This document shows positions 33,273 through 59,541 of a DNA stretch of 64,000 bases, piece by piece. The stretch lies in the NCBI GenBank assembly GCA_964019335.1, contig OZ025713.1:372001-436000 (forward strand), in the 5' to 3' direction. Position 1 is the stretch's first letter. Every line of letters starts with the position of its first letter. The translations under genes and the position numbers were made by a program. Source of the DNA: Diplonema japonicum (taxonomy: Eukaryota > Protista > Euglenozoa: Diplonemea). The notes below the pieces were generated by a model. The model saw nothing but the letters and a program-made list of their open reading frames with translations, had not been told where the DNA came from and searched no databases.

Positions 33273-34934
33273 CTAAGAGTCGTACTCAGGTGCACTATCA
33301 ACCTGGTCACCACACGACCACCTCACGCGGAAGCCGCTCCTCTGCACGGTGTTATCGCTAGTGAAGACAATAACAAGCGGCCCTGACAAGCTCTCGGGCA
33401 TCTCGCTGTTCGTGAGGATGAAGATGCCATGAGGGTGGTGCACCTGCACAAAATCGAAGCCCGCCTCAACGTCGTAGGCCTCCCACACAAAGTAGACGAT
33501 GGCGGGGCAGTTGATGAACCATGTCGCACGTGCGTTTTTTGGGTACACTCCTTCTGCAGGGTAGACAATGGTCCCTCCAGTCCCTACAGGAACAGGTGGA
33601 GGCACCACTTCAGACGGTGGGTCAGCAAGGTCGGAAGGAGGTTCACCCGAAGGGACCACACCACACCCCCACAACACTTTGAACCCACTCCTTTGGATGC
33701 TGTGATCGCTCGTGAACTGCACTGTGACAGGTCCCCTCAGCATATTCGGGAAGACCTCATCCGTCAAACTGAAGGTCCCGTTCTCATGACGCACCGAAAC
33801 GAAGTCGAACCCTTGCTCCACCTCATAACGCAGCCACAGAAAGTACACTGTTGCGTTGCAGTTGATCAGCCACTCTAGTTCTTCGTTGGTTCCATACTGC
33901 CCTCCGCCTGTAGGGTGCTCCACGACACCTTCTTCACCCACCGAGACCACCTCCACAGGAGGGGGTGTTGGAAGGACCCCACACCCCCACCGCACGTGGA
34001 AGCCCTCCTTCTCAACAGTACCGTCACTGACGAACTCTATGTTCAGAGGGCCGCTTAGGTTGCTGGGCAGGAAGGCACGCTCCACGCTGAGGGACCCGTT
34101 GGCATGGTGAACGGTCACAACGTCGAAGGCATCCTCAATGTCAAAGAGCTCCCATACAAAGTACACCGTTTCATGGCAGTTTATCAACCACGTCTCGCGT
34201 GCGTGCTTTGGATAGGGCCCGCCGCCTGCAGGGTAGACAATGGTACCTTCGGTGCCGGGAGGGAGGGGCTCACGGTCGACCCCACACCCCCACCACACGC
34301 GGAAGCCAGTCCCTGCCACGTCATTGTTGCTGGTGAAGATGAAGACGACGGGTCCTAACAAATTGTCGGGAAGGTTAAAGGATGTTAAGATGAGCGAGCC
34401 ATCCGGCCAGAAGGCTATCAAGGAGTCGAAGCTCAAGTCGATGTCATAGTGCTCCCACGAGAAGTACACGGTGTCCGTGCAGTTGATGACCCACACGAAG
34501 CGTGCGTTGTTGGGGTACTGCCCACCATGTGCAGGGAAGTCAATGACGTCCTCCGTCCCGACAGGCACGAAGACGCCAATGGGCGAGGGGGGTTCTACAC
34601 CGCAACCCCAGCGCATGGTGAAGCCCGTGCCTCTTATAGCTTCATTGCTGGTGAAGACGATCGTTATAGGGCCCTGCAGAATGGTGGGTTCGCTTGTAGA
34701 AGCGACCGTAATGGACAGCATGCCGCCGGTGTGGCTCACCGTCAGAAGATCGCCGACTTCGATGTCAAAGTGGTCCCACGCCATGGTCACGGTGTCCTCA
34801 CAGTCGATGGCCCACGTCATGCGTGCGTTGTTCGGGTACTCCTCACCTGGTGTCGGGTACACAATATACCCTGTCTCCCCCAACTGCACTGTCGCCATTG
34901 AAAAGCACAGTGCGGCGGTTATGAGGGCGTGCAT
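33273..34934 (-). CDS. Secreted protein with 5 tandem CUB-like domains (paralogue of 28758-31574)
   Basis: Signal peptide MHALITAALCFS; five YP.N..W.INC..W..YD.E..FD..FTSD..GF.VRWGCG units. ATG at 34934. Confidence 0.9.
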   Translation of the reverse strand: MHALITAALCFSMATVQLGETGYIVYPTPGEEYPNNARMTWAIDCEDTVTMAWDHFDIEVGDLLTVSHTGGMLSITVASTSEPTILQGPITIVFTSNEAIRGTGFTMRWGCGVEPPSPIGVFVPVGTEDVIDFPAHGGQYPNNARFVWVINCTDTVYFSWEHYDIDLSFDSLIAFWPDGSLILTSFNLPDNLLGPVVFIFTSNNDVAGTGFRVWWGCGVDREPLPPGTEGTIVYPAGGGPYPKHARETWLINCHETVYFVWELFDIEDAFDVVTVHHANGSLSVERAFLPSNLSGPLNIEFVSDGTVEKEGFHVRWGCGVLPTPPPVEVVSVGEEGVVEHPTGGGQYGTNEELEWLINCNATVYFLWLRYEVEQGFDFVSVRHENGTFSLTDEVFPNMLRGPVTVQFTSDHSIQRSGFKVLWGCGVVPSGEPPSDLADPPSEVVPPPVPVGTGGTIVYPAEGVYPKNARATWFINCPAIVYFVWEAYDVEAGFDFVQVHHPHGIFILTNSEMPESLSGPLVIVFTSDNTVQRSGFRVRWSCGDQVDSAPEYDS

Positions 34935-35315
34935 TTCTTCCTCTTTTTTTTTTTTTTTTTTTTTTCTCAATAGATGCAAATGCAACCTCGAACAAAGCAT
35001 GATAACCACATTATTTTTTTTTAGGGGGAATATAACTGTGGAAAAAAGAGAACGAAAAAAGAAAAAGGGGGAACGGAGAAAAAAAAAAGAGGAAACACCT
35101 CCCGAAGGATGATAAGGAAGGCCACATTGAGAAGACTCTTTTCAACAGCCAAAGTACCAAATGGCCCCAAAAAATGAAACGTGAAGAGAATAAAGATAAT
35201 GCCCTTCCCACACTGCAGTTTTTCAATTTCTCGAACGGTCGGGTTTTACAGTAAACTCTCTCTCTCTCTCTCTCTCTCTCTCCCCCCCCCCCCCCCCCAT
35301 CCCCCCCTTTTTTTG

Positions 35316-35435
35316 TGTTTTAACAATATTATTGTCGAGACTAAAAAAAAACTAGTTGATGGCAGCGTAATGAGCCATTTTACTAGGAAAATACCCGCTC
35401 GTGCACATAAAAATCATACAAATGAAGTGCTAAAC
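35316..35435 (+). repeat. Short interspersed ~100-bp repeat, copy 3
   Basis: Matches 8151-8258 (reverse) including aacaatattattgtcgagact, and 12800-12895. Confidence 0.65.
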
Positions 35436-35498
35436 TTTTTTTTTTTTTTTTTTCCCGTCGCCATCCTCATGGGTGCTAAACCCTATTATGACTTTCTT

Positions 35499-36596
35499 TT
35501 ATAGGTTCGTCCCACGTGAGTAACGGTCAGCTTTCTGCAACTTCCTGGAGACCAGCAATGGGATTAGTTTCGTGTTGTTGATGCCAAGCAGTGTGTCCAG
35601 TGTCTGAAGGATGTCCGTGTACATTTCGTTAGTTCGTTTCTTACGGTTCATAGCCTCGACTGCTGAGTGGTTGTCACCATAGAACATGACAATCTTCGGG
35701 CGGAAGATGCGCAAGGCAAAGGCAATCCCCTCTAGCGCAGCGACCAGCTCCTTCAAGTTGGTGTTGGGAGACTTAAGCAACGGTTTCGAGAAGAGGCCTT
35801 GTGATTTTTGTGCATCTTTGTGCTCCACCATAGGAACGAATGCTTCCTCGACCACTGTGCCCCACCCGACCTGAGAAGCATCAGCCCACACAAACACCGT
35901 GTCCACGCATTCTTTCCTTCCCTTCTTCTCGATCATCCTGTCGAGAATACGTTGTTGTATTGACACAATTTCCAGCTCTTCATCCAAGACTTCCACCGTC
36001 TTTCGTTTCATAAGTTTGAGCTTTTTTTTGCCTTTTTTCTGCAGATTCCTGGCAGTTACCTGTTTGAGCGGCTTTGTTTCAGCCGCTTTTCGGAGATCAG
36101 CCAGTTTCCGTGCCTTCTCCTTTGCCTCCTTCTTCTTCAGTCTGGTTTCTGGGTCTGTCATAAAGGTCAGTGGCTTAAATACAGGTATAGATGCCACGTC
36201 GCGGAACGGGCCAAGACTTGCGAGATCTTGTTCGAACTTTTTGGCTTTTCTCTGCAGCTTCTGGGCGGCTTTCTCATTGCTTAGCTGTTTGGCTTTTTTC
36301 AAATTTATCTGTTTGTGTTTCTTTGTTTCCTTGCGCTTTGCTTCGGCCGCTTTTTTGAGTTCAGCGTTCTTGAGTTTCTGCAGTTGGAGTGCCTTTTCTC
36401 TACGCTTTTCCGCTTTTTCTGCCTTCCTCTCCTTCTTACTCTTCCGTTTGAACTCTATGTTTTTCATAAATGTCACTAATTCAACATCTCTGCTGACCGG
36501 CTTAAATACAGGTACAGATGCCACGTCGCGGAAGGGGGTGAGAGGCAACGCACTAGCGCACCGTCTGGGAACACATCGAAGGATCAAACGTGCCAT
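35499..36596 (-). CDS. Presequence-like N-terminus + Lys-rich tract + DIRS/YR-type RNase H domain (paralogue 1)
   Basis: MARLILRCVPRRCASA; duplicated PFRDVAS.PVFKP; RNase H motifs VWADASQVGWG, NLKELVA, YGDN, QKADRYSRG. Confidence 0.85.
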   Translation of the reverse strand: MARLILRCVPRRCASALPLTPFRDVASVPVFKPVSRDVELVTFMKNIEFKRKSKKERKAEKAEKRREKALQLQKLKNAELKKAAEAKRKETKKHKQINLKKAKQLSNEKAAQKLQRKAKKFEQDLASLGPFRDVASIPVFKPLTFMTDPETRLKKKEAKEKARKLADLRKAAETKPLKQVTARNLQKKGKKKLKLMKRKTVEVLDEELEIVSIQQRILDRMIEKKGRKECVDTVFVWADASQVGWGTVVEEAFVPMVEHKDAQKSQGLFSKPLLKSPNTNLKELVAALEGIAFALRIFRPKIVMFYGDNHSAVEAMNRKKRTNEMYTDILQTLDTLLGINNTKLIPLLVSRKLQKADRYSRGTNL

Positions 36597-36871
36597 TTGG
36601 GTCTATATAGATTGGTGCCGAATGCTCTGAGCTATACCATTGGCTTCCTGCAGTGGCTCAGAGGTGGCTTGAAAAGACAAACAAAATTGAACGAAAAGAA
36701 CATTACGCCTCATGTCTATTAAAAACCCGTCGTGGTGGTGTGCCTCCACTAGGAGGACACAAAAACTTGCTATTTTTTTTTCAAAACATGGCTGCACTGA
36801 ACTCGTATCGCGATTCTCTTCAATGATAGAACGCTTGGTCTGTTTTATTAGTATTATTATTGATAATTTGG

Positions 36872-36903
<32 letters not shown>

Positions 36904-37220
36904 GTGCATTTACCGTGAAAGTACAATGCATAAAAGGGAAACTCAAGACCAGTGTTGAAGAAATGGATCATTATGCCTAAAGCTCTCCCTAGCTTCGTAC
37001 CTCAACTCTGCGAAACAAACTGCGGATATGTATCCCTACTAGTCACTTTCTGTGTCCCCCTGCATACGTATTTTAGCTATGTGTAGACACTGCTGTGTAC
37101 ATAAACAACATGCTTGTCTGTCTCGTCGTCACTCGGGTCCTCTTCACAGTGCGATGCTTGAGTGCACGTTTCGTATGGACAGCCAGCTGTCCGTCTTCCT
37201 TTTTCCGTTAAAAAAAAAAA

Positions 37221-38870
37221 GAGACATTTAAGGGTACCTGCGGTATGTGGCAGGACGCCTGAAGAGTCTCAATCTATCTCTTGATCGAACCTTTCTGCTG
37301 TGGTGTGGCCTTCGGCCCCTCGTTCGCCCTCCTCGGTACCTTAGGTATAAAACCCTCAACCGAGTTGGTAAGGACACAATAGTTGTACAGTTGTTTCTCA
37401 AGGATGTGGTGGGTCGCCGGGGAGGCGAATACCGGTCTAGAGGAGTAGCCCCTTATGGAGCCGTTGTAGTAACCCAACGTGCGTAGGGAGTGGACAGAGG
37501 CTACCGAAGCAGCTGGAATGAGGGGCGCTATGCGCTTATTGGTGTGGATGCGTTCTAGTGCCGCTATCACCCGGCCTATGACACGCACGCTCTCCTGGAT
37601 GTCCTCACCCTCTCCACAAGGCGAGAGTCCCTCTGTGGCAATGAAGTCCACGGCCAGCTCAAGCTGGAGACCTGTCCACCTGTTGTGCCCCAGTGAAGGG
37701 CCGAGAGCCATCGGATGACGTGCGGGAATAGCCGCGGGAGGTACTGTTGCCTCAAACCGTTGTCGTAGTACCACCTCAGTGACCGCGGCTTGAGCAAACT
37801 CCCCTTCTCGAAGGGCCTGTCACAAGTGAACACTGAAGTCCACTGTCTTCTTTCGTGCAAAGGCGAGTTGCAAGTTACCAGTAATCTCCGCCATCATTAG
37901 CTGTAACTCAGCTGTTTCCAGCACGAGTCCCCCCGTCGCAATGCCATGCAGTTGTGTGCACTGGGGCCACTGGTTACGTTGTGCGCATAGTGCCGCCCGC
38001 TTCTCGGATGCTGTCCTGATGTGCTCGTGTGCCTGACAGTCCCAGAGGGTGTGCTCCAGGAGCCTTGATGTGTGTTGCGAAACGTTGAAAGTAGCATCGC
38101 ATCCCATGCATTTCGTCCGCCCCCCGACCGTGTCATTGATGACCTTGGGGTGGAATGGGAAAACGGCCCCCACTATCACCTGTAGCACCCTTCGAGCTTC
38201 GGGCGGATTGCGAGTCGCCAGGTGTAAGTGTAGCCCGTTGGTGGCCTTCTCGTCGATGTTGCCCGTCCCCTGAAAGGAGGGTCTGCTCTCTTCTAGGGCC
38301 GTTCGCAGGTGGGCCTTCAGGAGCTTCCTGACCTCGTGCTTCAGGGCCCTTGGCTCCAGGGGTACCCATTGCCACGCAAACTGTGCCCAGCTGTACCCCA
38401 GTTCCCCCAACAGTTCGTGGGTCTGTCCGAGCATCCCGCAAGGGCCGAGGGGGCTCCCGCCCCGGGCGGCTTCCTTGTACTTGTCCCTGCACGTCTTAAC
38501 GAGTGCCCTGGACCCTTCGTCGCTCTGCATCATTCGCGCAAACGTCGTGATTCTGCGGTATGCGGCTGCTGAATAAGGGTCCAGCCTGTGACCTTTGAAA
38601 GCCACCCCAAGGAGGGCTCCCGATGAGCGAGTCGGGTTGTGTGGGCCCCATATGGGAGAGGTAATTTTCTTCCTGAGGGAGTCCAGAAGCGAGTCCGTGG
38701 GCGGTGTGTAGAGCACTCCATAGAGCGCCGCTGGGAGGATGCAGTCCTCTATCAGTAGAGCCTTACGCGATCTCGTGATGTGGGTTACCGCGAGCCTGTC
38801 GACCGCATCCAGCGCCGTGGCAAACCTAGTGTTCTTCGTTTGGGTGGGCTGCAAGCACACTGTGCACCCC
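37221..38870 (-). mobile_element. 5'-truncated non-LTR retrotransposon (RT thumb + C-terminal zinc knuckle + 3' UTR)
   Basis: LIEDCILPAALYG..LDSLRKKI (post-RT thumb) and C..C..LEHTLWDC..H..IR (CCHC-like). No RT catalytic core. Confidence 0.75.
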
Positions 38871-39232
38871 AGCATAGTAATGCTTTTCACTGTTTCAAAT
38901 ACGGTGTCCCTCATTGCCAGCTTGCCTCTGTATCCCTTCTTTTCCCCGGGTCTAAAAAAAAGCAAGTAAAAGAAAAGAAAGAATAAGATATTTGTACACA
39001 CCTGAGCACCTTCCCATACATGAAGTAAAATGCCTGTTGGACCCTCAAAAAAAAAAAAATAGCCAAATCGCCTTTTTCTAGTTTGGCATCGTCATCAGAC
39101 TGATACTAAAATTCTTCATTCTTTTTTTTTTATTATTATCTCCCCCCCTCTTTTTTTTTTTCTCAGAGAAGTTGTAATCGTTTCATATTATATAATCCCC
39201 CCTAAACCCCTACCGACCCCTTACCCCAGGTT

Positions 39233-41224
39233 TCACACATAAACTCCACCTACTGAACATCCTATGTTTTTCCCTCTTGTGAAGGTGTCGGCTTTCTGAT
39301 GCTTGGAGGGCACCCATTTTATCGTGAGCCTGGTATTGGCGACTTCAAGCAGGCGGGTTATTGACTGCATAATGTAATCCACTGGTTGGTGCACCACCGA
39401 TTTAGTACCGCGGATGAGCTTGACGACTGACATGTTGTCTACTCGGAGGGTGATGGCCCTTGGGTTGCAGGTGCGTATAGCAAAGATGATGCCCTCCCTT
39501 GCAGCGAGCAATTCCTTCAAGAAGATGTCACTAGACTCGGATAGCAGCTGGGAGAAGGTCCCTTGTGCCACATGGGGCTTCGGCAACTCGAGCAGTACTC
39601 CCCAGCCCAAGTGAGAGGCATCCGTCCACACCTCCAGTTCATCGGGATGCCTCTCTACCTCCGTCATCGGCTCGTCCTGGATATCTTGCAGCACTGACAT
39701 AGCAGTCAAGGTCAGTTGCTCATATTCTTCTGCTGTCAGCCTTCTCTGCACGGGAGGTGTTTTTTTCTTTTTTGTTGGTGGTACTTTTGCAGTGGCATAT
39801 TCCACTACAAAGGATACTACGTCTGGCGAAAAATTTAGCAGAGCGTTTTTCACAGATTGCACGTCATTGTTTGTAAAGACCTTCCGTGTTACGTCATCTT
39901 TCTTTGACTTGTTCTGAACTTGGTTACCAGCTTGTCCATCAGTTTTCGCCAGTATTTGCAGCTTCCTCAGAGATCGGATTTGAGCTTTTGGCAGAGCTTT
40001 CTGAGAGCTCAGGCTTTGTTTTTTTTTAGGCTTCAAACTCAGAACTTCGAGTCGTTTATCCAGAATATATTTAACAGTGTTTGCCTGGTCCCTAAGAGCT
40101 GCTTGTTCCTTCGGTTTAGGTTCTTCTTGGGCTTGCTGTTGTTCCAGATCTGTTGCCTGTTGCATTGCAGCTTTTTTCAGGGTATTCCTCAAATATTTTT
40201 CAGTGGTTCGTTGTGCTTTCTTCAGAGATAGCTGTTTCTTCTGAGTTGCCCGTTTCTTCAGAGCTGCCTGTTTCTTCAGAGCTGCCTGTTTCTTCTGCGT
40301 TGCCTGTTTCTTCTGAGTTGCCCGTTTCTTCTGAGCTTTTGACTGTTTTAATTTAGCTACTTTCTTCCGCAGAGCTTTTGCTGCAGTCTTCGCGGCTTGT
40401 TGTTTTTTAGCTTGTTTCTGTAATTTCAGAGCTTTTGCCTGTTTCTGCTTAATTAGAGCTTTCTTTTGTTTCTGTGTCATTGTGGCTTGTTTCTGTGATT
40501 TCTTCTGAGCTTTTGCCTGTTTCTGCTTAATTAGAGCTTTCTTTTGTTTCTGTGTCTTTGCGGCTTGTTTCTGTGATTTCTTCTGAGCTTTTGCCTGTTT
40601 CTTCATTTCAGCTTTTTTCCGAGTTTGCAGTTCCTCAAGTCGTTTTTTAGCTTCTGCCCGTTTCTTCAGGGCTCGACTTTCTTGTTTATTCAGAACTTGC
40701 GCCTGTTTCTTCCGGGCTTGTCCTTCAGTGTCTTCTAGTACGTTCAGTTGTTCTTTTGGAGCTTTTTTTCGGGCTTGTTGTTGGTTTGTCTGTTGCCTAG
40801 CTTTTTCCAGGGCTTGCTGGTTCTCCGTGGCTTTTGCTAACTGCCGTACTTCTTGTGCTATGGCCTGCGCCCGATCAGTTCTCTTTTGAGCCACACTTTC
40901 AGCTGACACAACTTGTTTCCGTAGTTCAGTCGGATTTGTTTGATCATTTTCTTTCCGTTTTCCAGCCATCACCGGCACTTGGTACACAACGTGCCTCTTT
41001 AGAGGTTGTTGTGCAACTTTTGCCAGTGCATCTTGCAGAGATAGGTTTCCAACTTTCGCCTTCTTTGGAGCTCCTTCAAGGTGCTTGGACAGCCGGGGTT
41101 GTAGACTATGAGTCACTTTTAATGACTCAGCCCTCGTGACCATAGCCGGTTGCTGTTGTTGTACAGGAACCTCAGGTGCCATCGGGGGCCGCCTGGGAAC
41201 ACATCGAAGGATCACCCGTGCCAT
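39233..41224 (-). CDS. Presequence-like N-terminus + long K/Q/A-rich repetitive tract + DIRS/YR-type RNase H domain (paralogue 2)
   Basis: MARVILRCVPRRP (ATG 41224); QKKQA/KQAKAQKK repeats; VWTDASHLGWG, FLKELLA, RVDN, WVPSKHQKADTFTRG. Confidence 0.85.
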   Translation of the reverse strand: MARVILRCVPRRPPMAPEVPVQQQQPAMVTRAESLKVTHSLQPRLSKHLEGAPKKAKVGNLSLQDALAKVAQQPLKRHVVYQVPVMAGKRKENDQTNPTELRKQVVSAESVAQKRTDRAQAIAQEVRQLAKATENQQALEKARQQTNQQQARKKAPKEQLNVLEDTEGQARKKQAQVLNKQESRALKKRAEAKKRLEELQTRKKAEMKKQAKAQKKSQKQAAKTQKQKKALIKQKQAKAQKKSQKQATMTQKQKKALIKQKQAKALKLQKQAKKQQAAKTAAKALRKKVAKLKQSKAQKKRATQKKQATQKKQAALKKQAALKKRATQKKQLSLKKAQRTTEKYLRNTLKKAAMQQATDLEQQQAQEEPKPKEQAALRDQANTVKYILDKRLEVLSLKPKKKQSLSSQKALPKAQIRSLRKLQILAKTDGQAGNQVQNKSKKDDVTRKVFTNNDVQSVKNALLNFSPDVVSFVVEYATAKVPPTKKKKTPPVQRRLTAEEYEQLTLTAMSVLQDIQDEPMTEVERHPDELEVWTDASHLGWGVLLELPKPHVAQGTFSQLLSESSDIFLKELLAAREGIIFAIRTCNPRAITLRVDNMSVVKLIRGTKSVVHQPVDYIMQSITRLLEVANTRLTIKWVPSKHQKADTFTRGKNIGCSVGGVYV

Positions 41225-41531
41225 CTTGGTAGTCCTGTGAATGTGAATAGGCTTTGACAAGTGCTGAATGAAATATGGCAATTAGCATACTGCACTTGGT
41301 TTGACCTGCTCCATGGAAACAAAGCAGATTCCCGTTTGCTGAGGGCATGTGTCTGAGGTATGGTTCGAAGGTGTTCGAGGCAAGAGGCAGAATAAAGACA
41401 AATAAGATGGAAGATACTAAAAGTGAAGGGCAAAAGAGGAAGAAAAAAGGCCTAAAGTGAAAGAAAGAGATAACCCAGGGGAGGATTCCTGGACACCCAC
41501 ACCCAACTCATTTACTTCACTTAACTTCACT

Positions 41532-42449
41532 TCACTTCACCACTTCCGTCGAATCAGTTAAAGTGCTCAATCGCTGCTTGAAGGGGGGCATCCACTCCAC
41601 CGTAAGGTCGGTATCGTTGATGCTCAACATGTGAAATATACTCTTTATTATAAGGTTCGCCAGTTTGCTGTGTGCAGAACCCCTGCGAATGTCAGTGATG
41701 GCAGCCGCACCTGGGATGAAGAGGGTGATGGCCTTCGGGTGGTGGGCACGTATAGCAAAAGCAATACTCTCCTTTGCAGCAAGTAGTTCCTTTACATAAA
41801 TATCATCTGACTCAGAGAGTAGGCCTGAGAACTTCCCTTGTACCACACGGGGCTTGTGTGCTTCGTGTCCAGGCAGCTCAAGCACCGTCTCCCAGCTGTT
41901 CAAACGAGTATGTGTCCACACCACTGCCAGCCTTGTGCCAGTAACGTTCAACTGTGTCACTTGCTTACCACGTCGAAGCATTACTAGAGCGGATTTTGCC
42001 TTGTGAGCCAGCTCTTTGTACTCGTGTTTTTTTAGCTTTCTGAAGCCTTGTTTCTTCTTTAATCGTGGCCAAGCCTTTCTAGCGTTCAGGGAACCGGGTT
42101 TTAAATTGTAACACCGCAGCACATGCCAGGTTGGCATGAGCCTCCTGTAGCCCCGCCCACTCTGTGGCCGTACCCCAACAACAAGCTGCTGCAGGCGCCG
42201 TTTCCATGCCCTCTTCGGGGCCTTTTTTCCCTTCATGAACAGCATGGTGACTGGGTGCTCAGACAGTGGTCGGGAGCGGGTGCGGCGGTATGCACGGAGC
42301 CTAGCTACACGTAGGGTGTCCACATTGAGAAGGGGTGTGGACGCGGTTTCAGGTGCAGCTGCATCCCGCTCCTCCAGAGCAAGAGGAGGCTCGGGTTCAA
42401 TGGCCTTTGGCTTTCTAGGTAACCGCCTTGTCGAAAGGTATCGAAGCAT
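41532..42449 (-). CDS. Presequence-like N-terminus + Arg/Lys-rich region + catalytically degenerate RNase H domain (paralogue 3)
   Basis: MLRYLSTRRLPRK (ATG 42449); aligns to paralogue 2 (LELP..KP.V.QG.FS.LLSES.DI..KELLAA.E.I.FAIR...P.AITL) but WTD>WTH, VDN>IPG, KAD>RLS. Confidence 0.75.
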   Translation of the reverse strand: MLRYLSTRRLPRKPKAIEPEPPLALEERDAAAPETASTPLLNVDTLRVARLRAYRRTRSRPLSEHPVTMLFMKGKKAPKRAWKRRLQQLVVGVRPQSGRGYRRLMPTWHVLRCYNLKPGSLNARKAWPRLKKKQGFRKLKKHEYKELAHKAKSALVMLRRGKQVTQLNVTGTRLAVVWTHTRLNSWETVLELPGHEAHKPRVVQGKFSGLLSESDDIYVKELLAAKESIAFAIRAHHPKAITLFIPGAAAITDIRRGSAHSKLANLIIKSIFHMLSINDTDLTVEWMPPFKQRLSTLTDSTEVVK

Positions 42450-42952
42450 AACTCTTGTCAGCTTGGGGCATCCTGTCAGGTTGTGAATACGTTTTACACA
42501 AGAGAGTAAAGGGAGGGTTTCACCCAAAGTCAGATTGTAGTAAAATCAAAGCAGCGTTTTTAGGGGATAAGAAATAATATGAGAAAATATAAGAGCTAAA
42601 AGAAGCTGGTGTTGGTGGTGCCCTACACAAAACTGTCTGCTTGATTACAGTGGGCACACTGCAGCCGAGTTGTAGCTTCTTCTATGTTCTGCACTGTGTC
42701 CTTAATGCATGCAGTGTAAGTTCAACCCCAGCTACCCAGGTCGACCCAGGTAACCAAGATTCGGCACTTGTGCAGTTTACTCTGTATGTGTGAAAAAAAA
42801 AAAAAAAAAAAAAAAAAAAAGTGGGGATTGGTTTTTTTACACAGATTAACAAAAAAAAGGGGGGGGTTAAAACCCAACTCACAGCCTTCACGTGGCACCT
42901 CCTGTAAGTAAGCTTTGGCTGAAACCAATGTGAGCTATGGTAAACAAAAAAA

Positions 42953-42953
42953 A

Positions 42954-43011
<58 letters not shown>
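42953..43011. repeat. (TAA)n microsatellite
   Basis: Direct inspection. Confidence 0.95.
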
Positions 43012-43012
<1 letters not shown>

Positions 43013-43270
43013 ACAAGGGTGAGAGGGTAGGTTTTAAATGATGAGAAGAGTTAACAGAAGGAAGCCAAAGAGAGCAGTAGTGAAAAAGTGAATTGACAAG
43101 GGGGGAAAGAGGGAGGAGAAGCAGACGAAAGGGAAAAGAAACATGCAAGAGTGACACGGGGGTAGGGAACAAGCCCTCCAAGCCAATCCCAAAGCATGGA
43201 ATAACCCTACACTGCAGATCCAAGCTTGAGTACCACCCAACATCAACACTTAGGCACTGCCAAGGCAGAC

Positions 43271-43401
43271 CAGGTGTTGGTCAGTCCCATCCCATCCCCT
43301 AAAACGGAATACAGGCCTGGATGGGAGGACTCGATGGGACTCATGGGACTCTCCCCAACACTGTCATTATTTTTGATTTATTTAAAAAAAGATAGTTTTG
43401 C

Positions 43402-43436
<35 letters not shown>

Positions 43437-46400
43437 CCCTTTGGAAAAAAAAAAAAAAAATGGGGGAAAAAAAAAAGAGAAAAAAATCCTTGATTTTTTT
43501 TGACATACATGATGTGCTTACCTTTTTTTTTTTTTTTTCCTTCTTTTTTTCTTGTCTTCTCACATTTTTTCGCACACCTAAGCCAAGCTGTTGTTTCTGC
43601 TTTCCACATCAAATGTTGTATTTGGATGTAATAGAAAAGAGGGGAAATAATAAATAATATGTACAAGAGGAGGGTGTGTATGTTTATACAACCTGTGTAA
43701 ACAGACTGGTTTCTTGCTTTCAGCACTGCGCCCCTAATGTTCAATGTACAGCTCAACCCCTGCATCACACCCATATGCCTGTTTGTTGCACATATTTTCA
43801 TGTTATCCCCACCCCACCTGAAAATAATATATAGGATCTCAGCAGCCACCACCACGTGTGTGCACCCACCAACCTCAGTCCATCACACATTTCTTTTCGC
43901 TGTCAAAAGGTATGTACCCCTTGTTGGGTAAAGGGGTTGGCGATTAAGGGTGTTGCTTGGGTTCTCGGGTGGGTCATCTCACGATTCTTGTTCATAACGA
44001 ACTCATCTTTCGCCTTTTACTAAAGATGACCGTGGACATGGATCACTAAGTGATAACGTAATTTTTATAAAGGTCCAGCACCTTTCTTTTTTTTTTTGCA
44101 CAGAAGACACCTTCACCTTAAGTAAGGAGAGGAATGTGTTAACCCTTCACGAACGCCTCGTGGCTGTACCCCCGGGTTCCCCTGTCGGCATCTTTTCTTT
44201 TCCTTTTTTATTCTCGAGGGGGGTGAGGATATTTGTACCGCACACTGTGTTTCAAAAGTAAATAGCGATTTGAAAACTAAAAGGTGAAAAAACAACAAGG
44301 TGTGCTGATGCACGCTCAGCCCGCCTCTTCGCACGTCCCAGAGCACATTCCTCTCCTTGTCATGTCCTCGTTGAATAATCGAAGATTACTAATCGTGTTA
44401 TTGTGTTTAAGACAGACATTCGGGTACATATCCATCTTATACTGGATTCTAAGGTTTTCGGGGGTGAGAAACTGAACAAGGTTTCGACTTTAGACAACAA
44501 GGGAAATCTCCTACCCCAAAAAGCAAAAATGGATCACTCAAGGCTATTCGAGATAAAAAATTAAAAAAAAAAAGAAAGATAAAAATAGAAAAAAGAAGCT
44601 CCCAAGAAGGGCAGTTAAAGCGCAGCACTCGGCACGGTTCTGGGCTTCCCCTTGCGGTAGCTGCACACAGACTGTCGCTGTGAGGTGGCCTTGATTGCTT
44701 AACCAATGGAAACTAGCGAGATTTTTTTTCTTTTTTTCTTTTTTAAACCAATGGGGGCGGGGTGGGGCGATTTTTTTCTATGTAAGGTACAACAGAAAAC
44801 AAAGGAAAGCTGTTCCAAATAGCTCAGGAACACTGCGTTGCGGTCAGGAATTAACCTTTTAAGGTTCCTGCATGACTGCAGCACAACGAGTATCCCGGTT
44901 CTATTCTAGTTGCAGCAAGAGCAAACTACCGTCAATCTTGAACTTGCTAGGGGGTCAAACGATTGGGCTACTTTAAAGCGATGGTTGCAAAGCGGCTTTA
45001 CTGTTTTTGTTTTTTAAAAAGCTTCATGAAGGGTGGTGGACATTCTGACACAGGTGAACCTGGCAACCCCGTAGGGTTCCTTCATAGGTCTTTGCCGTGA
45101 GGTGGCTGTCTTCTGTTTTATGAGATCGACATTAAGCGAGATAAAAAGTTATTTTTTTTAAATTTAAGTGCAGGGCAAAATAGCAGGGAATACTGCATGG
45201 CACCACAGGGAATCAAACAGCCATGTATCTGTTCTTATCTTATATCTGATACAGCACCTCGTTATTTGTACCACGCGCACTGTGTTTTGAAATAAGATAA
45301 ATAAGGTTTTGAAAACTAAAAAGGGTGTAAAAACAGCAAAGTGTGCTGATGCACGCTCACAGTGCGTCATCCGCCCACCTCTTCGCACGTTCCAGAGCAC
45401 ATACCTTCAGTAATTGGAGATTACTTATCATTTTGTCGTTGGGGGTAGCTCAGGGCAATCTGAATCTAGGTGAGGTGTTGCCCTGGAGCTGCACAACATC
45501 CGGGAGTTTTTTTTAATCCATGATGTTCGTGCAGCGGAATTGTATTTTGCATCTGGTGAGGAAGAAGAGGAAGCTTCACAGAGCTACAGGAATATGTGAG
45601 TGGGTGTCCTTGATTCACTGTGCGTACGACGCAAGGCCACTGTCCCACGAAACTCCTTCAACAAGTCTGGCCTTGTGAAGCTGCTAAAAGAAAAGGGAGA
45701 GAAGGAGAAGGCCGTTGATACGTTCGGACGGGATGCACGTGCAGAACCTACCCGGGTCGCTGAGGACAAGTCAAGGACACGATGGATCCTACTGGACGGA
45801 ATCTGTGGGAGGAAAGAAAAGGAAGATGGAAATTCTTTTCTCACCTAAAGGCTGCGATTGGCGGACAGGGTATACCAGACGGTTTCTTCGTTCTTTCTGA
45901 CAGACAGAAGGGGCTGGAGGAGGGTGATAAAAGAAGAAGTCCCCCTGTCATGTGGGCAGATGCATGTATGGCATTTCTTCAAGTAATTTTGTTGAAGCTT
46001 AAGAGCAGCAACTGCAAGAAGTGTAAGTGGCACAATGGCTGCGACACTGTGTATCGGATCGATTCCGAGTAGATTGCTTTTTCAGTTTTGGACAAACGTG
46101 TTTCTCAATACCCCTCTTGGTGAAACTGACAGAGGTATGGGTGCCAAACCAACATGCTTCATCATCTTAGCAGATTTAAACTCAACACTGAAGTTAAAAC
46201 TCATCATCCACCAACTTTACAGGTTTCTTGTAAAATTGTTGCTTCAACAAATGTGGGTGGGACTTGAGGGAACACCTTTGAGTTGCGCCTCGTTTTGAGG
46301 AACACAACCCGCTTTCACGGACAAATGTGTCCCAGTAAAGCAAGTTAAATGTAATCTCTTGACAAGATTGACAACGACCCGATTTGACAGCCAAACGCAC

Positions 46401-46704
46401 CACATCCTTGTGTGTATGTCTGGCAGTCAGATCAGTTATCAAACAAGCTCAGCAGACGACTTTTCACTACTTAAATATTAGAACTAGAAGAAACTTGGCA
46501 TGTGGTGCTACCACCCATTTTTTTACACCCGTTTTCATTCCTGCAGCTTTTGTAGCCTTTTTTACTGGTGGAAAAGGACAGCCACTCCAACGAAAAGCCC
46601 CTGCTGTCACCAATTCTGTCCAGAAATCCTCGTATCTTCCACAACACATCACCGTTTGACTCTTCTGTGTGAGTGAAGTAGAGGCTAGTACGTCTCCTGG
46701 GCAT
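43271..46704 (-). mobile_element. Highly degraded hAT-like element(s)
   Basis: 43271-43720 is homologous to 47849-48440 of the adjacent hAT. Two copies of an (C)ERASAH-like hAT C-terminal remnant (44240-44350, 45260-45400). C..C motif near 46370. Confidence 0.45.
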
Positions 46705-46708
46705 CGTC

Positions 46709-46878
46709 TAGTGTTTGTGAAGACGAAAGCAGGAGTTCACGATTTGGAGGTGGCTGGGACGGAGACAGTGGGGAACCTGTACAGGAAGGCGGGGTGTGCT
46801 GTGGTTTGCTGAATGGGATGTTCAAACTAGTTTGGGAGAAGGAGGTCCTGAGCAGGTTCAGGGATGAGGATGTTCAGG
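46709..46878 (+). pseudogene. Truncated Ubl-LRR family 5' fragment
   Basis: Nucleotide homology to 53444-53615 (gtgtt.gtgaagacg...gttcacgat.tgga...ctgtaca.gaaggcggggtgtgctg). Frameshifted and cut at a cagtgttg hAT-like end (46880). Confidence 0.75.
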
Positions 46879-48535
46879 GCAGTGTTGTTACGAGAATGGG
46901 TTGCCCCCCCGAGATTTTCGGGGGGGCAAATCCAGGGGGGTGGGGGGCAAAAAAAATTTTTTATAGTGTCCAAAAAAAATTTTTTTCCACCCAAAAAAAG
47001 TTGTCAAAGACACCCAAAAATTGATTTTTTTTTCCAAAAAAAAATTTTTTTTTCCTCAAAAGTACCTATCCTAGGCCTTAATAGAGGCTTTTAGTGAAGT
47101 GGGGTGAAAGTGAGATGTTTGGGGGTCAAAAAAAGAGGTGCCCAAAAAAAATTATTTTTCACATGAACAAGTGGTCAAAAACACCTGAAAAGTGGTTTTT
47201 TACCTGTCCTGTGCCACCATCTGGACATGTGTGCACTTCAGGGAGTGGGTAGAACAGTGTTGGTCCAGACCCTTGAGGGACTCAGGGGACTCCAAGGGAC
47301 AGGACAGGAGTCCCCTGAAATTTTCAGGGGTCTGGAGGGGACTCAGGGGACTCAGGGGACTGAAGGGACTCAAGGGACTCAGGGGACTCAGGGGACTCTT
47401 GGGACCAAAAAATTTCTTTGTGTTTTTTGTGTCACAAAGACCCAAATTTAGGCTGGGGCTTGCATTTTTTTGGTACTTTTGGTTTCAAAAGTTCAAAATA
47501 AGAGGTCCTAGGTTTGGGTGGGATGTGAGGCAAGGCTCATACTACCTTGTTGTGACTATGTAAAAAAAAGAAAAAAAAAAAAAATTAAAAAAAATGTCAG
47601 GGGGTTTGGAGACCTGCTTTGAAAAAAATATTAAAAAGAGGCCTTTGCAAGAAAAGTACAATGCAAAAAAAAAAAAAAAAAAAGTAAAAAAAGGGATGGG
47701 CAGTGTTGGCCAGACTGGGGTCTGAGGGGTCTGGCCCACAAACCACCCCAACACTGCAAATTTTCGACCACACCATGTGGTGTGTTGTGACATATTTTAC
47801 ACCATATTTCACATACCTGATGTTCCACATGATGTATGCAACACAGGGCAGTGTTGGTCAGTCCCGTCCCGTCCCCTAAAACGGAATACAGGCCTGGACG
47901 GGACTCACGGGACTCCACGGGATAGGACTCGACGGGACTCACGGGACTCCACAGGACTCTCCCCAACACTGTCATTATTTTTGATAGTTTTGCAACTTTT
48001 TTTTTTTTTTTTTTTTTCCCTTTGGAAAAAAAAAAAAAAAAATCCTTGATTTTTTTTTTTGACATACATGATGTGTTTACCCAGGGTTGGTCAGACCAGA
48101 CCAGTCTGGTAAAACCGAAAATACAGGTCTGAGGGGTCTACTGACCAGTCTGGCCCCAACTTTTTTTTTCCTTCGTCAGGTGTCTTGCCACACACCACAG
48201 GTACCCTAAATGTCTTTCTTTTTCTTTTTCTTCTTCTTCATACCACAGACATGCACAGCTCCATCAAGCCATTTGACACATTTGCACCTATCTACTCCGG
48301 TTCACTGCAGCTGCAGGTATGTACATATGTCCTGAAATGTTGAATTTGGATGTAATAGAAAAGGGTGGAAATGATAAATAATATGTACAAGAGGAGGGTG
48401 TGTGTTTACACAACCTGTGTAAACAGATTGGTTCCTTAATCGTATTTAAAAAAAGAAGGGGGGGAAGCAATATATTTTTACAGGTGGGTAATGGGTGAGT
48501 GTGTTTATGTTTTGAACAACTGTGTAAAACAGTGC

Positions 48536-51136
48536 TCAGATATCGACCTGTGTAAACAGATCAGTTCCTTCCTTTCCAAGGTGCTCAGCTCTTTTCGAGC
48601 GGCTTGCCTTTTCTTTCTTCTCGCTCACAAAAAAATTAGGTTGAACCAACTTGTAGTTGATAGCAACACGGATTGATGCATTTAGAACATCCAATGACAT
48701 TCTGCATCTGGCTTTTGACAAAGTCTTTGAAATCACTTTAAAGTGACGCTCCGTTGGTGCCTCAGAGGTTAAACTGTGCCCAAGCGTCAGCACAAAGACA
48801 GCTAGCGTGTGAAGCATGCCAAGCTTCGAGTTCCAAAAAGCAAAAAAGTTTAACGTTGGGCTGCGACCTATTGCTAGGTACTCGTCAATCTGCATCCCCA
48901 GCTGCTGCCGATCTGCCATCATTTTTCGCAATTCAGCGAACGGGACGAGGTGATCCAGCAGTGTGTTTCGCAGTGTGACCAAGTCTGAAAGTTCTCCAGT
49001 TGATACTTTGGGATTCAGAAAAGTATACAACCTGATACCAAGAAACGACATGTTTCGTTCGGCCCTTGCTTCATAAACCTTGATGACTTCAGAGACTGTG
49101 GTAGCATTGAGTTACCCCTCCACCTGGGATTCAAGGAATTTCTTCAAGCTCTTTCCAACAACGAAAATTTCATATGCCACCATAGCCATGCCAGATGTGT
49201 CCCCTTGCACACGATCTGTCGCAACTGCGAAGGGCGTGGAAATCTGTATCGCGAATTCCAGCTCTGCCCCAAACCCTGCCTCTATGCCTGGAAAGAATTC
49301 TAGGAGATCAAGGATGGACTTCATCGTTTCGAAAAACGAATTCCATCTGGTCTTTGTGTACCTCTTGATCTGTCTCGTCTTTTCACGGCATACTCCATGT
49401 GAGACCTGTACGGTGTGGAGTGCCAACTGCCCAGCTTTCGAGGTCCATCTCTTGATCAGCGTTTTCACTTTGGCTCTAATGTTAGCCAGTCGCTCAATCT
49501 TGAAGATGTCACCAAGGGCAAGTTGCATGGAATGTGCAACACAACGATATGCTAGGACACCTTCACAACTCAGCATTGTAGTTGTATCGTTCAAAAGCTG
49601 GTCCATTCTGGCAGAGAGCTCAGTGTTGTCGGAGTTGGTGTCGGTTTCAGAGTTGGAGTCAAGGTCAGTGACACCTGAAGCATCACTACTGCTAATGTTG
49701 CTGCTAACATCCTCAGTGTCGTCGAGTGAGAGGTCGAGTTCCACTTCGAAGTCTCGATGTATCTTTGCAAGCGCTGCTTGCATCGCACTAGCATTATCAG
49801 CACATACTGAAAATACATGTACAACATGGCTCCGAAGTTCCAGTATCATTTCACGGATGTGGGACGAAATGACAGCAGCAGTGGCACTCACTTTTGTAAG
49901 GTCTATCATCTTGCAAAAGTAGCTGTTCTTCCCATCTGACATACTAATGCCAAGGATGCTTCAACGGTTTATTGTGGCCCCATCAACAAGGAGGTACACA
50001 TTCTGCCCTTGGAGCCTGTTTAGGACAGCAGCGTATGTCTCCTGTCCAAGTTCAACAACACAGCTTTGCACGTGTTTCCTGTTGATTCCTTTCAATTTGC
50101 CTGCATCGAAAAAGCTGTGAAAGAACTTTCGATCACACAAAACAAACGGCAGGCAATACAGGCAAAGGAAAATGGACACACGATCCACCATACTCAGGGC
50201 TCGCATCTCTTGGACAACACATCTCTTTGCTGCGAGATTTGAGCCTTGAGAATGAGGCGAACCCTGTGACAGCGACAACCCTGGCATTGGCTCAGAGATC
50301 AGACGGCACTTTTCTTTCACTGGACTGCACTTTTCTTTTGCCAGCTTGGGGATCTTTGCAGCTGTCTTCTTCTTCAGCTTTTCTGCCAATTTCGCTTTCG
50401 CACCAGGGCTGTGTCTGCACTCCCAGTGCTCCTTCAGCTTCCCCGATCTTGACCAGATAGTCACCGCACGTTCAACACACTCAGGGGCAAGACACAGCCG
50501 CTTCTCCATGACCGTGCCATCCTTTTCCTTTGTCACTATCTTGCCAAAGTAGTACTCCTTAGAAGGGTCGATACCATGTGCATCACCAACAGACCATGTC
50601 TTGTTGTCCCAGATGGATGTCTTGGGTGTTGTAGAACATTCCTTGGCAGGTGCTTCCAACATGACTAGTGCGTTTCCGGACGAGGTGTGTGTTGCCTTAG
50701 GTTGTAAGGCTTCAGCCTTCAGAACTTTGATGGTGTCTTGTAGCTCTGTGATTCGTGCTTTTGCAAGACCAAGTTTTGCCATGGTATCACGAAGCTGGTA
50801 TGGGTTGTGGTTTATCGTCTTTATAGCCTCAAGACGATAAACCCGTTCATCTTCCACATTTGGGGGGAAGTGGTGCAGGTACCCAGGATCCTGTGCATAC
50901 TCACACGAAACAGCAACACCTGGCAAGATGCCAACAATCTTCCCATCCCAGACAGAAACCATGTCGTCCTGTGTTGGTTTCTTGTGTCGCTCCCCTCCAG
51001 TGCCCCAGAAGTGGGCTCTGAAGGTTGTGCCTTCTCCTTTCCCCTTCATGAAATGCAACATTTCATCATGGCTGAGGCCATTCTTGTTGCCAGTCTGGGT
51101 AAGGTCTTGTGTTTTCACATATTTCTGTGAGAACAC
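48536..51136 (-). pseudogene. hAT transposase, split into three ORFs
   Basis: BED-like C..PEC..H...H; LLVDGAT; CADNASAM; RCVAHSMQL; TRWNS; FW..SEAPTERHF dimerisation motif. Confidence 0.9.
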
Positions 51137-51894
51137 AGTTGATGCCTTTTGTGTTGAGATGTGTCCATCAATGCTGCCACTGCTGCTGCTTGTACTTGAA
51201 CTTTCTCTTTTGCGCTTCTTTATTTTATTTTATTTTTTTTTTTTTTTTTTTTTTTTCAAATGTTTAAACCTTTCTCTTCATTTTTGTATTGATTTCCTCC
51301 TCTTCTTCCTCCTCCTCTAGTTCAGATTTACCTGAACATAGCCCATACCATGCCATATTGAGTTGGCAGTCATGTTTCTGGTGCTTATCCTCTGCACCCC
51401 TTTCACCTTCTTTGCTATTTGGCACAGCTTCGGTGTCGGGAATGAAGAACAGAAGCAGAACAAGTACCACAATCATTTTATCTGTTAATTGTAAAAAATA
51501 ATACAAAGAAAATGATAAACAAAGGCTAAATACTGTATAAATACACATCGACTCTGACAGCAATGCAACACAATGTGAAGCAACATGATGTGTTTTCTGT
51601 TCACATTTCATTCACTTGACACAAAAAATGTGAAGTAACACAACACAACACACCAAAGTGTCGTTTTATATTGTACCATACAGTGTATAAAATATTTTCT
51701 GTGTCGAAATTTCTAAAAAAAACTCCCAGAAGGGCTGCCCTTTCATAACTGAAAGTTAGATTTTTTCTTCTTCTTTTTTTTTTTTTTTTACATAATTTGT
51801 GTTGTACTTTTGTCATGATAAGGAATACATGCCAGGTCTTTTTTTTTTTTTTTTTTTGCATTGTACTTTTCTTGCAAGCCTCTTTTTAATATTT

Positions 51895-57200: not shown

Positions 57201-58329
57201 CCAGCCCTGGGGCACGTACGAACCGCGTCAAGAAGGCCTTAAATAGCTTTTTATAGAATTTTACAGTCGATTCTTTTTGACTTGTTTTTTGTACCCCCTC
57301 TCGGGCACTTCAGGAACGATATTTTTGACAATGTTGTGGGGGTGGGCCCTGCTGTGGGCACCCTCTCTCTAGAATTGGGACATCCCTTAGTAGCCAAAAA
57401 AAAAAAAAGTGTAAAGTGTTAAACAGCCAGCAAAGCTTGTGGAAAGAGAACACCAAGAAAAAAAAAGAGAGAGAAAAAAAGACCAGGACCACCCCCGATA
57501 ACGTATAATTAAGAATAAAAATTGTGGGGGGGGAAGGATACTGAGGTCTGGCACCAGCGGATGAGGATGCGGGAAAGGGGGTTGCACTGCTTTCCCTGCC
57601 AAAGCTAGTCGAGGGTGCACACCTTGCAACATATGGGGCCCGACGGCACATGGTGACGACAGGAGACCACTTTTCTCCTCGAGCCAAACAGCCCCTTACC
57701 TTGCATGACTCCATGTAATGTTCCTCGCCCAGATGCCGTCCATCTCATCACGACAAACAGCCACCGCAGGCACCAGACAGCAACCGCAGTACGGTGACCG
57801 ATTAGTGTGGATTTCTACTTGAACAGTGAACACTCCCCTATGTGCACTGAAGCTTTATCGATTTTTTTAATTTTTTTTATTTGCTTCCAAGCTTTCTCTT
57901 GAAACTTTTGATTGTTACCTCAAGTTAGTTACCGTTCTTACTGAGTGCCGTTTGACTTTGTCACCTTGATGTTAAAAGATCGACTTTTTTTTTCTTCTTC
58001 TTTTTTTTATTTTTTATTTTCTTCTGATGACCGTGGTGGTCGAGCTTTCTTTACCTCTCCACTTTCGGGGCGAAGTTTAACAAGGGTGACCGCTGTGTCA
58101 CATTCCGCATGGCACCACTAAAATCGAGTCCCCCCTCCCCCTTCTTCTTCTTTTTTTTTCTTTTTTTTTTTTTTCCAGTGTGTCTTCTCTTTTTGTTGTT
58201 CTTCTTTCACAAGCATTATTATTGTGCGCCTGTGGTGTGGGTTTACCTTCAACATGAATACAAGGGGGGGGGGGGGGGGGGGGAAGAAGAAGAAAAAAAA
58301 TGGCGCCGGTGGGAGCATCAACGCCAACA

Positions 58330-58588
58330 CAGTGCAAGTACCTGCCGATTTGGCAGGTTCGAAGCTCTGTGCCGGAGGTACCGCATCGTGATCGGCGAGA
58401 CGTCGGCTCCGTCACAGGTGGGTAGAGTCTTGGGTCTGGAGTTCGACCTCCAATGCAAGAGATGGAGGATGTGCAGCAAGTGGATCGAAGCCCTGAAACC
58501 GGTACTGGAGGACTTCGTGTTTGACAGACCCCTACAGCTTCGGAGGTGGTGGAGGCTCTGCGGTCTTGTACTTTGGCATCAGAGGATA
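58330..58588 (+). mobile_element. DIRS/YR-like reverse transcriptase C-terminal fragment
   Basis: YRIVIGETSAPSQVGRVLGLEFDL..W and LRRWWRLCGLVLW resemble the post-YxDD segment (K/S..PSQ...LG..FD; R....L.G.L.W) of DIRS-group RTs. Confidence 0.5.
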
Positions 58589-59232
58589 ATGGAAGAGTCG
58601 GAGCTAAGCCGGGAGAAGAAGAACAAAATGCTCGTATTTTTCAAGGGGCTGTTGGTGGCTCTCCTGCGGTGCAAACCGCGCAACCCCATCAGCTTCTGTG
58701 AGAAGTACGTTGAAGAAAAAGTAGAAGGCGACGAACTAGAAACCAGCCTGTGCAGAAGCTGGAGGGGAGACTTCAACACCTACGACTTCACCAGAGACAC
58801 CTCAGACGTGTTCCAAGTAAATAACCGAGATGTCTATGGGGAGTACGAGACTATTAGAAAAACCCTCGACTTCAACTACCACGGTAACTACTCAAAAACC
58901 CGACAAGCAGTCCAAGACATAGCGGTCTCCGACGTTGTCCTGGGCGGTGAACTCAAATCCGAACCCTGGCTCGTCTACACAGCAGGAGCAATGGGGGCTG
59001 GGAAGTCCCATGTTATCAGGTGGATGTCCGACCACGGGTATTTCCCACTACCGGACATCGTTCAAATAGACCCCGATCGGTTCAAAGAAATGCTCCCAGA
59101 ATGGCAGGGCTACATGGAGCATGACCCCATGCAAGCTGGGGGTAGAATGCGCAAGGAATCCGGGTATCTAGTTGAAATCGCACAGCACAAGGCAATGGAC
59201 ATGGGCAAGAACGTGTGGGTGGACGGGTCCCT
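58589..59232 (+). pseudogene. RIIa/Dpy-30-like helix pair + Zeta-toxin-like P-loop kinase, C-terminally truncated (or first exon)
   Basis: LLVALLRCKPRNPISF; WLVYTAGAMGAGKS (Walker A); IDPDRFKEMLPEW; KESGYLVE; NVWVDGSL, then similarity stops. Confidence 0.65.
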
Positions 59233-59541
59233 GCCCAGAGCACTGGCTAGGGTTGAGCTGCACACCACATGCATTAAGGACACAACGTGGAACGCAAACG
59301 CGGCCGAGGTGCACCCTGTCACTGGTCTCCTTTACCTCTTTTATTGTTGCGTGGTTTATTTTGTCTTGAAACTACATTTCGCGTTAAAATTTTTGTTTTA
59401 ATTGAAACCGGCAGGGTTGGCTTAAAATGAAATCAGATGGTCAAAATAGCAGCGAAAACGTGAGTCTCCCCCGACTGGTCAGATAAAGAGGAAAAAGACG
59501 ATGAGGTGGTCAAAGAGGGGCCGGAAACGATGCTTGGGTGG

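Follow-up and report, generated by a model that had tools for sequence, protein, structure and literature searches.

We have studied three adjacent genes of the diplonemid Diplonema japonicum, which lie on the minus strand at positions 35499-42449 of a stretch of 64,000 nucleotides from contig OZ025713.1 (the window). The genes, which we call P1, P2 and P3, are intact open reading frames (ORFs) that have one common layout, comprising an acid-free, arginine-rich leader, a polybasic region and a C-terminal domain of the ribonuclease H (RNase H) type. The domain derives from tyrosine-recombinase (YR) retrotransposons of the DIRS order, but the genes are not themselves such elements: no reverse transcriptase (RT) or recombinase of that type adjoins them, and the parts outside the RNase H domain are unique to the locus. 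Our reading is that they form a tandem family of host genes founded by a captured RNase H, whose products would cut RNA:DNA hybrids in the mitochondrion and would use the polybasic segment to grip them. We give this reading as a whole a probability of about 0.5.

Architecture and fold of the three proteins

The C-terminal domain comprises about 130 residues in each protein, and ends no more than 15 residues before the stop codon. The three domains are 39-44% identical to one another, with BLASTP E values of 1e-23 (P2 with P1) and 2e-27 (P2 with P3) that are far beyond chance. P1 and P2 keep the D-E-D-D residues, which align in register with those of the retroelement RNase H domains, so that all four catalytic carboxylates are retained by two sequences of only 39% identity. 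P3 keeps only the glutamate, with H, P and L at the three aspartate positions (where it reads HTR, PG and RLS). The D-E-D-D pattern quoted in the initial annotation for the first two paralogues is therefore found in P1 and P2, but not in P3.

Models of the P2 and P3 domains were calculated with AlphaFold2 (AF2), using a small alignment of genomic relatives as input. The confidence score (predicted local distance difference test, pLDDT) was 84 for P2 and 83 for P3, and the same order of elements, β1-β2-β3-αA-β4-αB-αD-β5-αE, is seen in both. The inserted helix C, and with it the basic protrusion, is missing from the models, and in that of P2 only a short loop connects αB and αD. Comparison of the P2 model with the PDB using Foldseek gave a probability of 1.0 and template modeling (TM) scores of 0.58-0.70 to RNase HI chains. 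The matches, all with probability 1.0, include the RNase HI of Sulfolobus, Halobacterium and Mycobacterium, and the RT-associated RNase H of HIV-1, Ty3 and cauliflower mosaic virus. In the ESM Atlas there were only weak leads (score 0.87 or lower), to clusters of RT-type RNase H. The AF2 models and the Foldseek matches bear out the identification of the domain, and we have high confidence in the prediction that it folds as an RNase H.

At the other end of the proteins, the first acidic residue occurs at position 24 in P1 and at position 18 in both P2 and P3, leaving acid-free leaders of 23, 17 and 17 residues. Each has four or five arginine or lysine residues, and a hydrophobic moment of 0.72-0.83, a value that we use descriptively only. 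The leaders of P1 and P2 are nearly the same, with identity at 11 of the first 12 amino acids and 32 of the first 36 nucleotides. That of P3 can be aligned with them, although CTG has replaced its ancestral ATG and the start is now an ATG four codons downstream. Another ATG, out of frame, occurs about 20 nt upstream of the P3 start (window 42449-42475, minus strand) and opens an 18-codon frame that overlaps P3. It could dampen the translation of P3, depending on the splice acceptor used.

Between leader and RNase H domain lies the basic region, with a net charge of +35 in P1, +80 in P2 and +33 in P3; the pI values are 10.3-12.0. In P2 it is made in part of tandem repeats of 18, 27, 54 and 78 bp. 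In P1 an internal repeat, PFRDVAS[VI]PVFKP, occurs at approximately residues 20-32 and 129-141 (window 36190-36540, minus strand), with a lysine-rich stretch following each copy, a pattern which suggests that the region has lengthened through the duplication of a module. The single architecture proposed at the outset for three intact ORFs on one strand has thus been found in all its parts, i.e., the ORFs, the acid-free N-termini, the basic regions and the homologous C-terminal domains. The basic region had been described as a tail, however, and is in fact internal.

Descent from a YR retroelement

The closest relatives of the domain are found within retroelements. Within the D. japonicum genome, multi-copy RT-RNase H ORFs that match RVT_1 have a C-terminal RNase H with 45% identity to the P2 domain (E = 2e-17), and a recombinase-like HSIRRGALH motif lies upstream of these ORFs. 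A second family of elements in the genome is about 30% identical to the P2 domain. The motifs DAS..GW, KEL, DN and KAD..TRG are common to the domains of the trio and the RNase H of the elements, while homology in the connection region upstream of the RNase H core is marginal at best. A profile search over 1.84 billion representative proteins gave 79 matches, the best E value outside the genome being 9e-23. Apart from a fragment that is exactly part of P1, nearly all the long matches hold the RT/connection region of elements of the same type, or RVT_1. The named relatives are entries of Diplonema papillatum called 'Gag-Pro-Pol/Gag-Pol polyprotein', and one transcript of D. ambulator. By these matches, too, the host is a diplonemid. 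A D. papillatum protein of 1,238 residues has weak, sub-threshold matches to Phage_integrase and RVT_1 ahead of its RNase H. The order recombinase-RT-RNase H is that of VIPER and TATE, the euglenozoan branch of the DIRS order (PMC6681497), and TATE-like ORFs have been reported in D. papillatum (PMC10161547). The DIRS/YR-type RNase H initially recognized from its motifs is consequently seen in direct homology with the RT-fused RNase H of YR elements, and the sequence comparisons support placing the domain in the RNase H lineage of the VIPER/TATE-like retrotransposons.

Did the three genes arise from one capture? A maximum-likelihood tree was calculated for 32 RNase H domains, from which long-branched or short library matches seen in a first quick tree were excluded. 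P1, P2 and P3 lie on one side of a single branch (ultrafast bootstrap 91, Shimodaira-Hasegawa-like approximate likelihood ratio test 72; 88% of the bootstrap trees), with P1 and P2 as sisters (96/83 for the same two measures). The Diplonema elements fall within a 20-member clade that excludes the trio. The branch of P2 is short (0.54), and those of P1 (2.1) and P3 (2.3) are long. Because the three group in the tree and share the leader, a single origin is probable, with one capture followed by tandem duplication. The founder would have been the 3′-terminal RNase H portion of a YR pol gene, from an element of the DIRS order with the VIPER/TATE-like layout of recombinase, RT and RNase H, and would have come to lie behind a new leader and polybasic segment. 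It would then have been duplicated in tandem, and a later segmental duplication of 15 kb would have given rise to the second pair of P2 and P3.

The separation of the genes from any element is seen in the following. When element proteins were compared with the whole window by tblastn, the only matches were the three RNase H domains and a small scrap of RT at 58346-58591, so that no RT or tyrosine recombinase of a YR element was found near P1-P3. Nor is the architecture found inside multi-copy retroelements, since the leader and basic parts of the three proteins match nothing in the genome of 62.5 Mb except themselves and the segmental duplicate. The RT scrap itself (plus strand, 79 residues) is 91% identical to the RT of a YR element (family L019), and lies within an ORF at 58109-59401 that has a Zeta_toxin domain match further downstream.

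The statement in the initial annotation that no RT adjoins the genes holds for the RT and recombinase of YR elements, but needs amendment at one point, in that a piece of a long interspersed nuclear element (LINE), unrelated to the RNase H family, makes up the ORF that separates P1 from P2 (37820-39001). Its 393 residues are present in more than 100 copies in the genome, some of them within ORFs of 1,450-1,780 residues. RVT_1 ends in a longer copy about where the window fragment starts, so that the ORF is the post-RT end of a 5′-truncated LINE. Four sequencing runs compared at the locus are DNA assemblies (approximately 61-66 Mb, one of 706 Mb; contigs up to 100 kb). A contig of run X8 joins position 39002 directly to 36839, without the block that contains the LINE. 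The block was therefore inserted later, and the genes originally stood in a tight tandem, P3-P2-P1; the insertion may be polymorphic among the sequenced samples. Neither X3 nor X8 has a contig over P1 (35600-36599) though P2 is covered, and such holes prove nothing.

Some further observations were made on the LINE and its surroundings. For its 3′ end (window 37210-37420) there were 667 first-look candidates and 41 matches, and the 40 copies that were scored all begin at 37210, on the plus strand. In the copies an A-run precedes 37210, corresponding to a T-run past the end of the element on the coding strand. The first 53 bases of the 3′ end also stand alone beside a full copy, and the contig depth at 37210-37420 exceeds that of the flanks by a factor of about 100-1000. 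In a PF00075 search of the genome for the cellular RNase H1, LINE copies were so numerous (more than 150) that they obscured the result. An Rfam scan of 35000-43000 gave no match.

The LINE fragment, P2 and P3 are contained within the duplicated segment, and P1 lies outside it. The two copies of the segment are 99.7% identical overall, and are the same throughout 36992-51151 save for one homopolymer indel. Both copies of P2, and both of P3, are identical, and therefore the duplicate provides no signal of selection. The depth of DNA run X7 was 16.5 over P1 and 31-34 over P2, consistent with copies in the ratio 1:2. The amplification suggested earlier can hence be described as tandem duplication, followed by a recent segmental duplication that added a second P2 and P3. 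A LINE-mediated origin for the 15-kb duplication was considered, but is disfavored by the left boundary of the copy, which does not coincide with the A-run (36872-36903) and is found 8 nt past it. Elsewhere in the genome a gene for a mitochondrial-type Hsp60, split into at least three exons, occurs twice, about 36 kb apart (G000:C20:625646-627713 and 661498-663819). This split and doubled gene indicates that the genome has spliceosomal introns and further recent segmental duplications. The coordinates of the features at the locus are collected in Table 1.

Table 1. Features of the P1-P3 locus, in window coordinates
Feature	Position	Strand	Description
P1 gene	35499-36596	-	365 aa; leader, basic region and RNase H with D-E-D-D; one genomic copy
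P1 RNase H core	35502-35897	-	residues 234-365
P1 polybasic region, rich in K, E and R	35898-36506	-	net charge +35
P1 acid-free, Arg-rich leader	36528-36596	-	23 aa
Later insertion block	36840-39001	-	contains 5′-truncated LINE; outside the RNase H family
15-kb duplicated segment	36872-51902		second copy 50,221 bp further along the contig (contig coordinates 459093-474142)
LINE body	37210-39001	-	ORF 37820-39001; a further 370 bp after the body, ending in an A-run
P2 gene	39233-41224 (ATG at 41224)	-	663 aa; leader, very long basic region rich in K, Q and A, and RNase H with D-E-D-D; two genomic copies
P2 RNase H core	39236-39637	-	residues 530-663; least diverged of the three
P3-P2 intergenic region	41282-41531	-	long polypyrimidine tract followed by AG dinucleotides
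P3 gene	41532-42449	-	305 aa; leader, region rich in R and K, and RNase H fold; two genomic copies
P3 catalytically degenerate RNase H-fold domain	41535-41927	-	from sequence alignment and AF2 model

Possible function and the alternatives

Are P1, P2 and P3 functional genes of their host? The synonymous divergence (dS) between the paralogues is at least 1.1, and is saturated, yet frames of 305-663 codons that are rich in lysine codons have stayed open. Neutral drift would be expected to leave many stop codons and frameshifts in such frames, so their persistence points to coding constraint. The trio lies within an array of genes (5115-51136) that are all on the minus strand and include those for a purple acid phosphatase, an LVIVD protein, a BspA-type leucine-rich repeat protein, a Nodulin-like transporter and WSC/CUB proteins; a CUB-domain gene is at 33273-35009. 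Euglenozoan trans-splice sites consist of a polypyrimidine tract and AG. The region between P3 and P2 has these features and is likely to be the spliced-leader acceptor context for P2, and comparable tracts lie at approximately 36640-36700 before P1 and 42480-42610 before P3. There is also some indication of transcription. The protein P0001, for which EukProt is the sole source, is identical to the C-terminal 170 residues of P1. Another diplonemid entry of that collection bears a TRINITY name, and for diplonemids apart from D. papillatum such protein sets were derived from transcriptomes (PMC12699882). Since P0001 comes from what appears to be such a set, P1 is probably transcribed.

If the genes are functional, what might the proteins do? 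With their four metal-binding carboxylates, P1 and P2 are most likely nucleases for the RNA strand of RNA:DNA hybrids. Retroviral RNase H domains in isolation bind their substrate poorly, and need polymerase and connection domains or an added basic element. Here the RT and connection domains are gone, and the model has none of the basic protrusion of RNase H1; for that reason the polybasic segment most likely supplies the grip on nucleic acid. P1 and P2 would then act as autonomous hybrid nucleases. In P3 the fold is kept and the active site lost, so it may be a non-catalytic binder or a partner of its paralogues.

The conserved leader, being acid-free, rich in arginine and amphipathic, would most likely direct the proteins to the mitochondrion. 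There the substrates would be RNA:DNA hybrids of the multi-circle mitochondrial DNA, for example primers or R-loops. The Hsp60 of this genome likewise starts with a short, basic, acid-free leader, rich in serine and threonine. In D. papillatum there is a 21-member family of alanine- and lysine-rich proteins that are predicted to be mitochondrial, most of which have a C-terminal DNA-binding HMG (high mobility group) motif (PMC12699882). The combination of a leader, a lysine-rich region and a nucleic acid-directed domain thus has a precedent in the lineage. TargetP2, MitoFates and DeepLoc have been benchmarked on D. papillatum proteins (PMC12699882). Provided that the genes are functional, we put mitochondrial targeting at roughly even odds, judging from the leader sequences. 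The complete proposal, an enzyme family of two active members and one inactive partner, each a captured RNase H with presequence and polybasic handle, acting upon RNA:DNA hybrids of the mitochondrial circles, is possible but doubtful.

A number of observations weigh against the reading of the trio as host genes for mitochondrial hybrid nucleases. No Pfam or NCBIfam model (PF00075, PF13456, PF17917 and PF17919 included) matches the domain of P1, P2 or P3 at E values up to 1, though some distant relatives from the protein library do match those Pfam RNase H models. For the RNase H domain, the ratio of nonsynonymous to synonymous substitution rates (dN/dS) is about 0.5-0.6 by the NG86 and YN00 methods, and maximum-likelihood estimates are 0.06-0.57; with dS saturated these values are unreliable, and purifying selection on the trio is at best moderate and poorly measured. 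P1 and P3 are on long branches, and P3 has lost its ancestral start and has the out-of-frame ATG before the new one. There is no entry for P2 or P3 in the protein collections (profile search of the 1.84 billion representatives), and all four sequencing runs at the locus, being DNA assemblies, carry no expression information; a search of sequencing runs gave none recorded as RNA. The same representatives, which include the D. papillatum proteome and transcriptome sets of other diplonemids, hold no orthologue of this architecture. A word-indexed homologue search with the P1 domain gave no match, a scan of JGI metagenome contigs with the domain alignment gave no relative, and full-length P1 and P3 are absent from the protein collections by exact-sequence look-up. 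Low expression could hide orthologues in species represented by transcriptomes only. Targeting to the mitochondrion, while plausible, is deduced from amino acid composition. A search of the genome with the Pfam HMG_box model for an alanine- and lysine-rich HMG family found ordinary HMG proteins only, and lysine-rich stretches are equally typical of nuclear and nucleolar proteins.

This last point leads to the main rival, in which the trio are expressed host genes with a nuclear or nucleolar role. The lysine-rich segment would serve as nuclear localization signal and as a binder of chromatin or nucleic acid, and the RNase H would serve to resolve R-loops, or be directed against RNA:DNA intermediates of LINE and YR elements as a fast-evolving restriction factor. 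Genes in conflict are expected to show what is seen here, i.e., restriction to one lineage, tandem and segmental duplication, long branches and raised dN/dS, and the genome has hundreds of near-identical, apparently recent LINE copies together with several YR-element families. Long stretches of lysine and arginine are, moreover, common in nuclear proteins. Yet the first 12 residues, almost invariant between P1 and P2, are arginine-rich, acid-free and amphipathic, which is a better fit to an organellar presequence, and we regard the nuclear alternative as rather unlikely. A different view of the same locus would make the genes non-functional leftovers, in which a low-complexity ORF gained the 3′ fragment of a retroelement behind it, and the product was duplicated and now drifts, with any transcription of P1 as polycistronic read-through. 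The failure to find an orthologue in the collections searched agrees with this, as do the loss of three catalytic residues and the ancestral start codon from P3, the unreliable dN/dS of about 0.5, the absence of P2 and P3 from transcriptome-derived protein sets and the tolerance of a LINE between P1 and P2. It is difficult to reconcile with three open frames of 305-663 codons, at a dS of at least 1.1 and with lysine codons a single step from stops, or with the intact D-E-D-D of P1 and P2 at 39% identity. Conservation of the structural core extends even to P3, which, like P2, gives a confident RNase H model, and the leader is strongly conserved, far more than the rest. Drifting leftovers are an unlikely explanation.

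There is in addition the possibility that the trio belongs to an unrecognized mobile or non-autonomous retroelement that encodes only a fusion of basic protein and RNase H. The domain is of retroelement type, other pieces of transposons are present in the region, and P2 and P3 exist in two copies. However, the two copies belong to a single 15-kb segmental duplication, in which unrelated sequence is also included. Nothing else in the 62.5 Mb matches the leader and basic parts, and the paralogues are deeply diverged neighbors that are not dispersed. From the number and position of the copies, a mobile element of this kind is highly improbable.

Overall, the trio have the appearance of a young family of host genes and not of transposon debris, and probably constitute a lineage-restricted, exapted RNase H family. 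The word 'domesticated', used of the genes in the initial annotation, is justified in part. It agrees with the frames that are open despite saturated divergence, the conserved leader and the presence of P1 in a probably transcriptome-derived set; it is not helped by the lack of an orthologue, a dN/dS of about 0.5 and the lack of a transcript record for P2 and P3.

Comparison with known systems and significance

The elements of the DIRS order, especially those that are VIPER/TATE-like and their diplonemid relatives, have the RNase H at the same C-terminal position and are the closest relatives in sequence. In contrast to them, the ORFs of the trio neither contain nor adjoin RT, recombinase or gag, are confined to a single locus, and have a leader and polybasic region of their own. 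Amongst vertebrate genes derived from retroelements, NYNRIN retains both RNase H and integrase. Genes of this type (e.g., NYNRIN/CGIN1; PMC3670739) likewise have a pol-derived enzymatic domain at a single locus, fused to an unrelated N-terminus. They are of LTR/retroviral origin, are conserved across mammals and have documented expression, whereas the trio are of YR origin, are found in one species only and have RNase H as their sole domain.

Cellular RNase H1, which in mammals has nuclear and mitochondrial isoforms (PMC9410905), has the same fold and D-E-D-D residues, and the same order of targeting peptide, binding module and catalytic domain. The trio differ from it in the lack of the hybrid-binding domain, of a match to PF00075 and, in the model, of the basic protrusion, as well as in their retroelement ancestry. 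The alanine- and lysine-rich proteins of D. papillatum (PMC12699882) similarly comprise a leader, a long lysine-rich region and a C-terminal domain directed to nucleic acid. The C-terminus of the trio is a nuclease fold, however, and not an HMG domain; the likeness seen is one of layout. Trypanosomatid kinetoplast-associated H1-like proteins are of comparable design, with leader and lysine-rich region. Host genes derived from transposons are well known, the cases that have been catalogued being mostly gag, protease, integrase and transposase domains. In a limited literature search we found no report of a stand-alone RNase H host gene from a YR retroelement.

Should the three genes be drifting remnants, the locus would be an ordinary one. 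If P1 and P2 are active, they would be a natural experiment in which an RNase H of the RT type, dependent upon its polymerase, has been made autonomous by a polybasic segment. They would also be candidate factors for the poorly understood mitochondrial replication and RNA biology of diplonemids, or for the control of retroelements. And if the mitochondrial assignment is true, the trio would provide the first known case of an organellar enzyme that comes from a tyrosine-recombinase retroelement.

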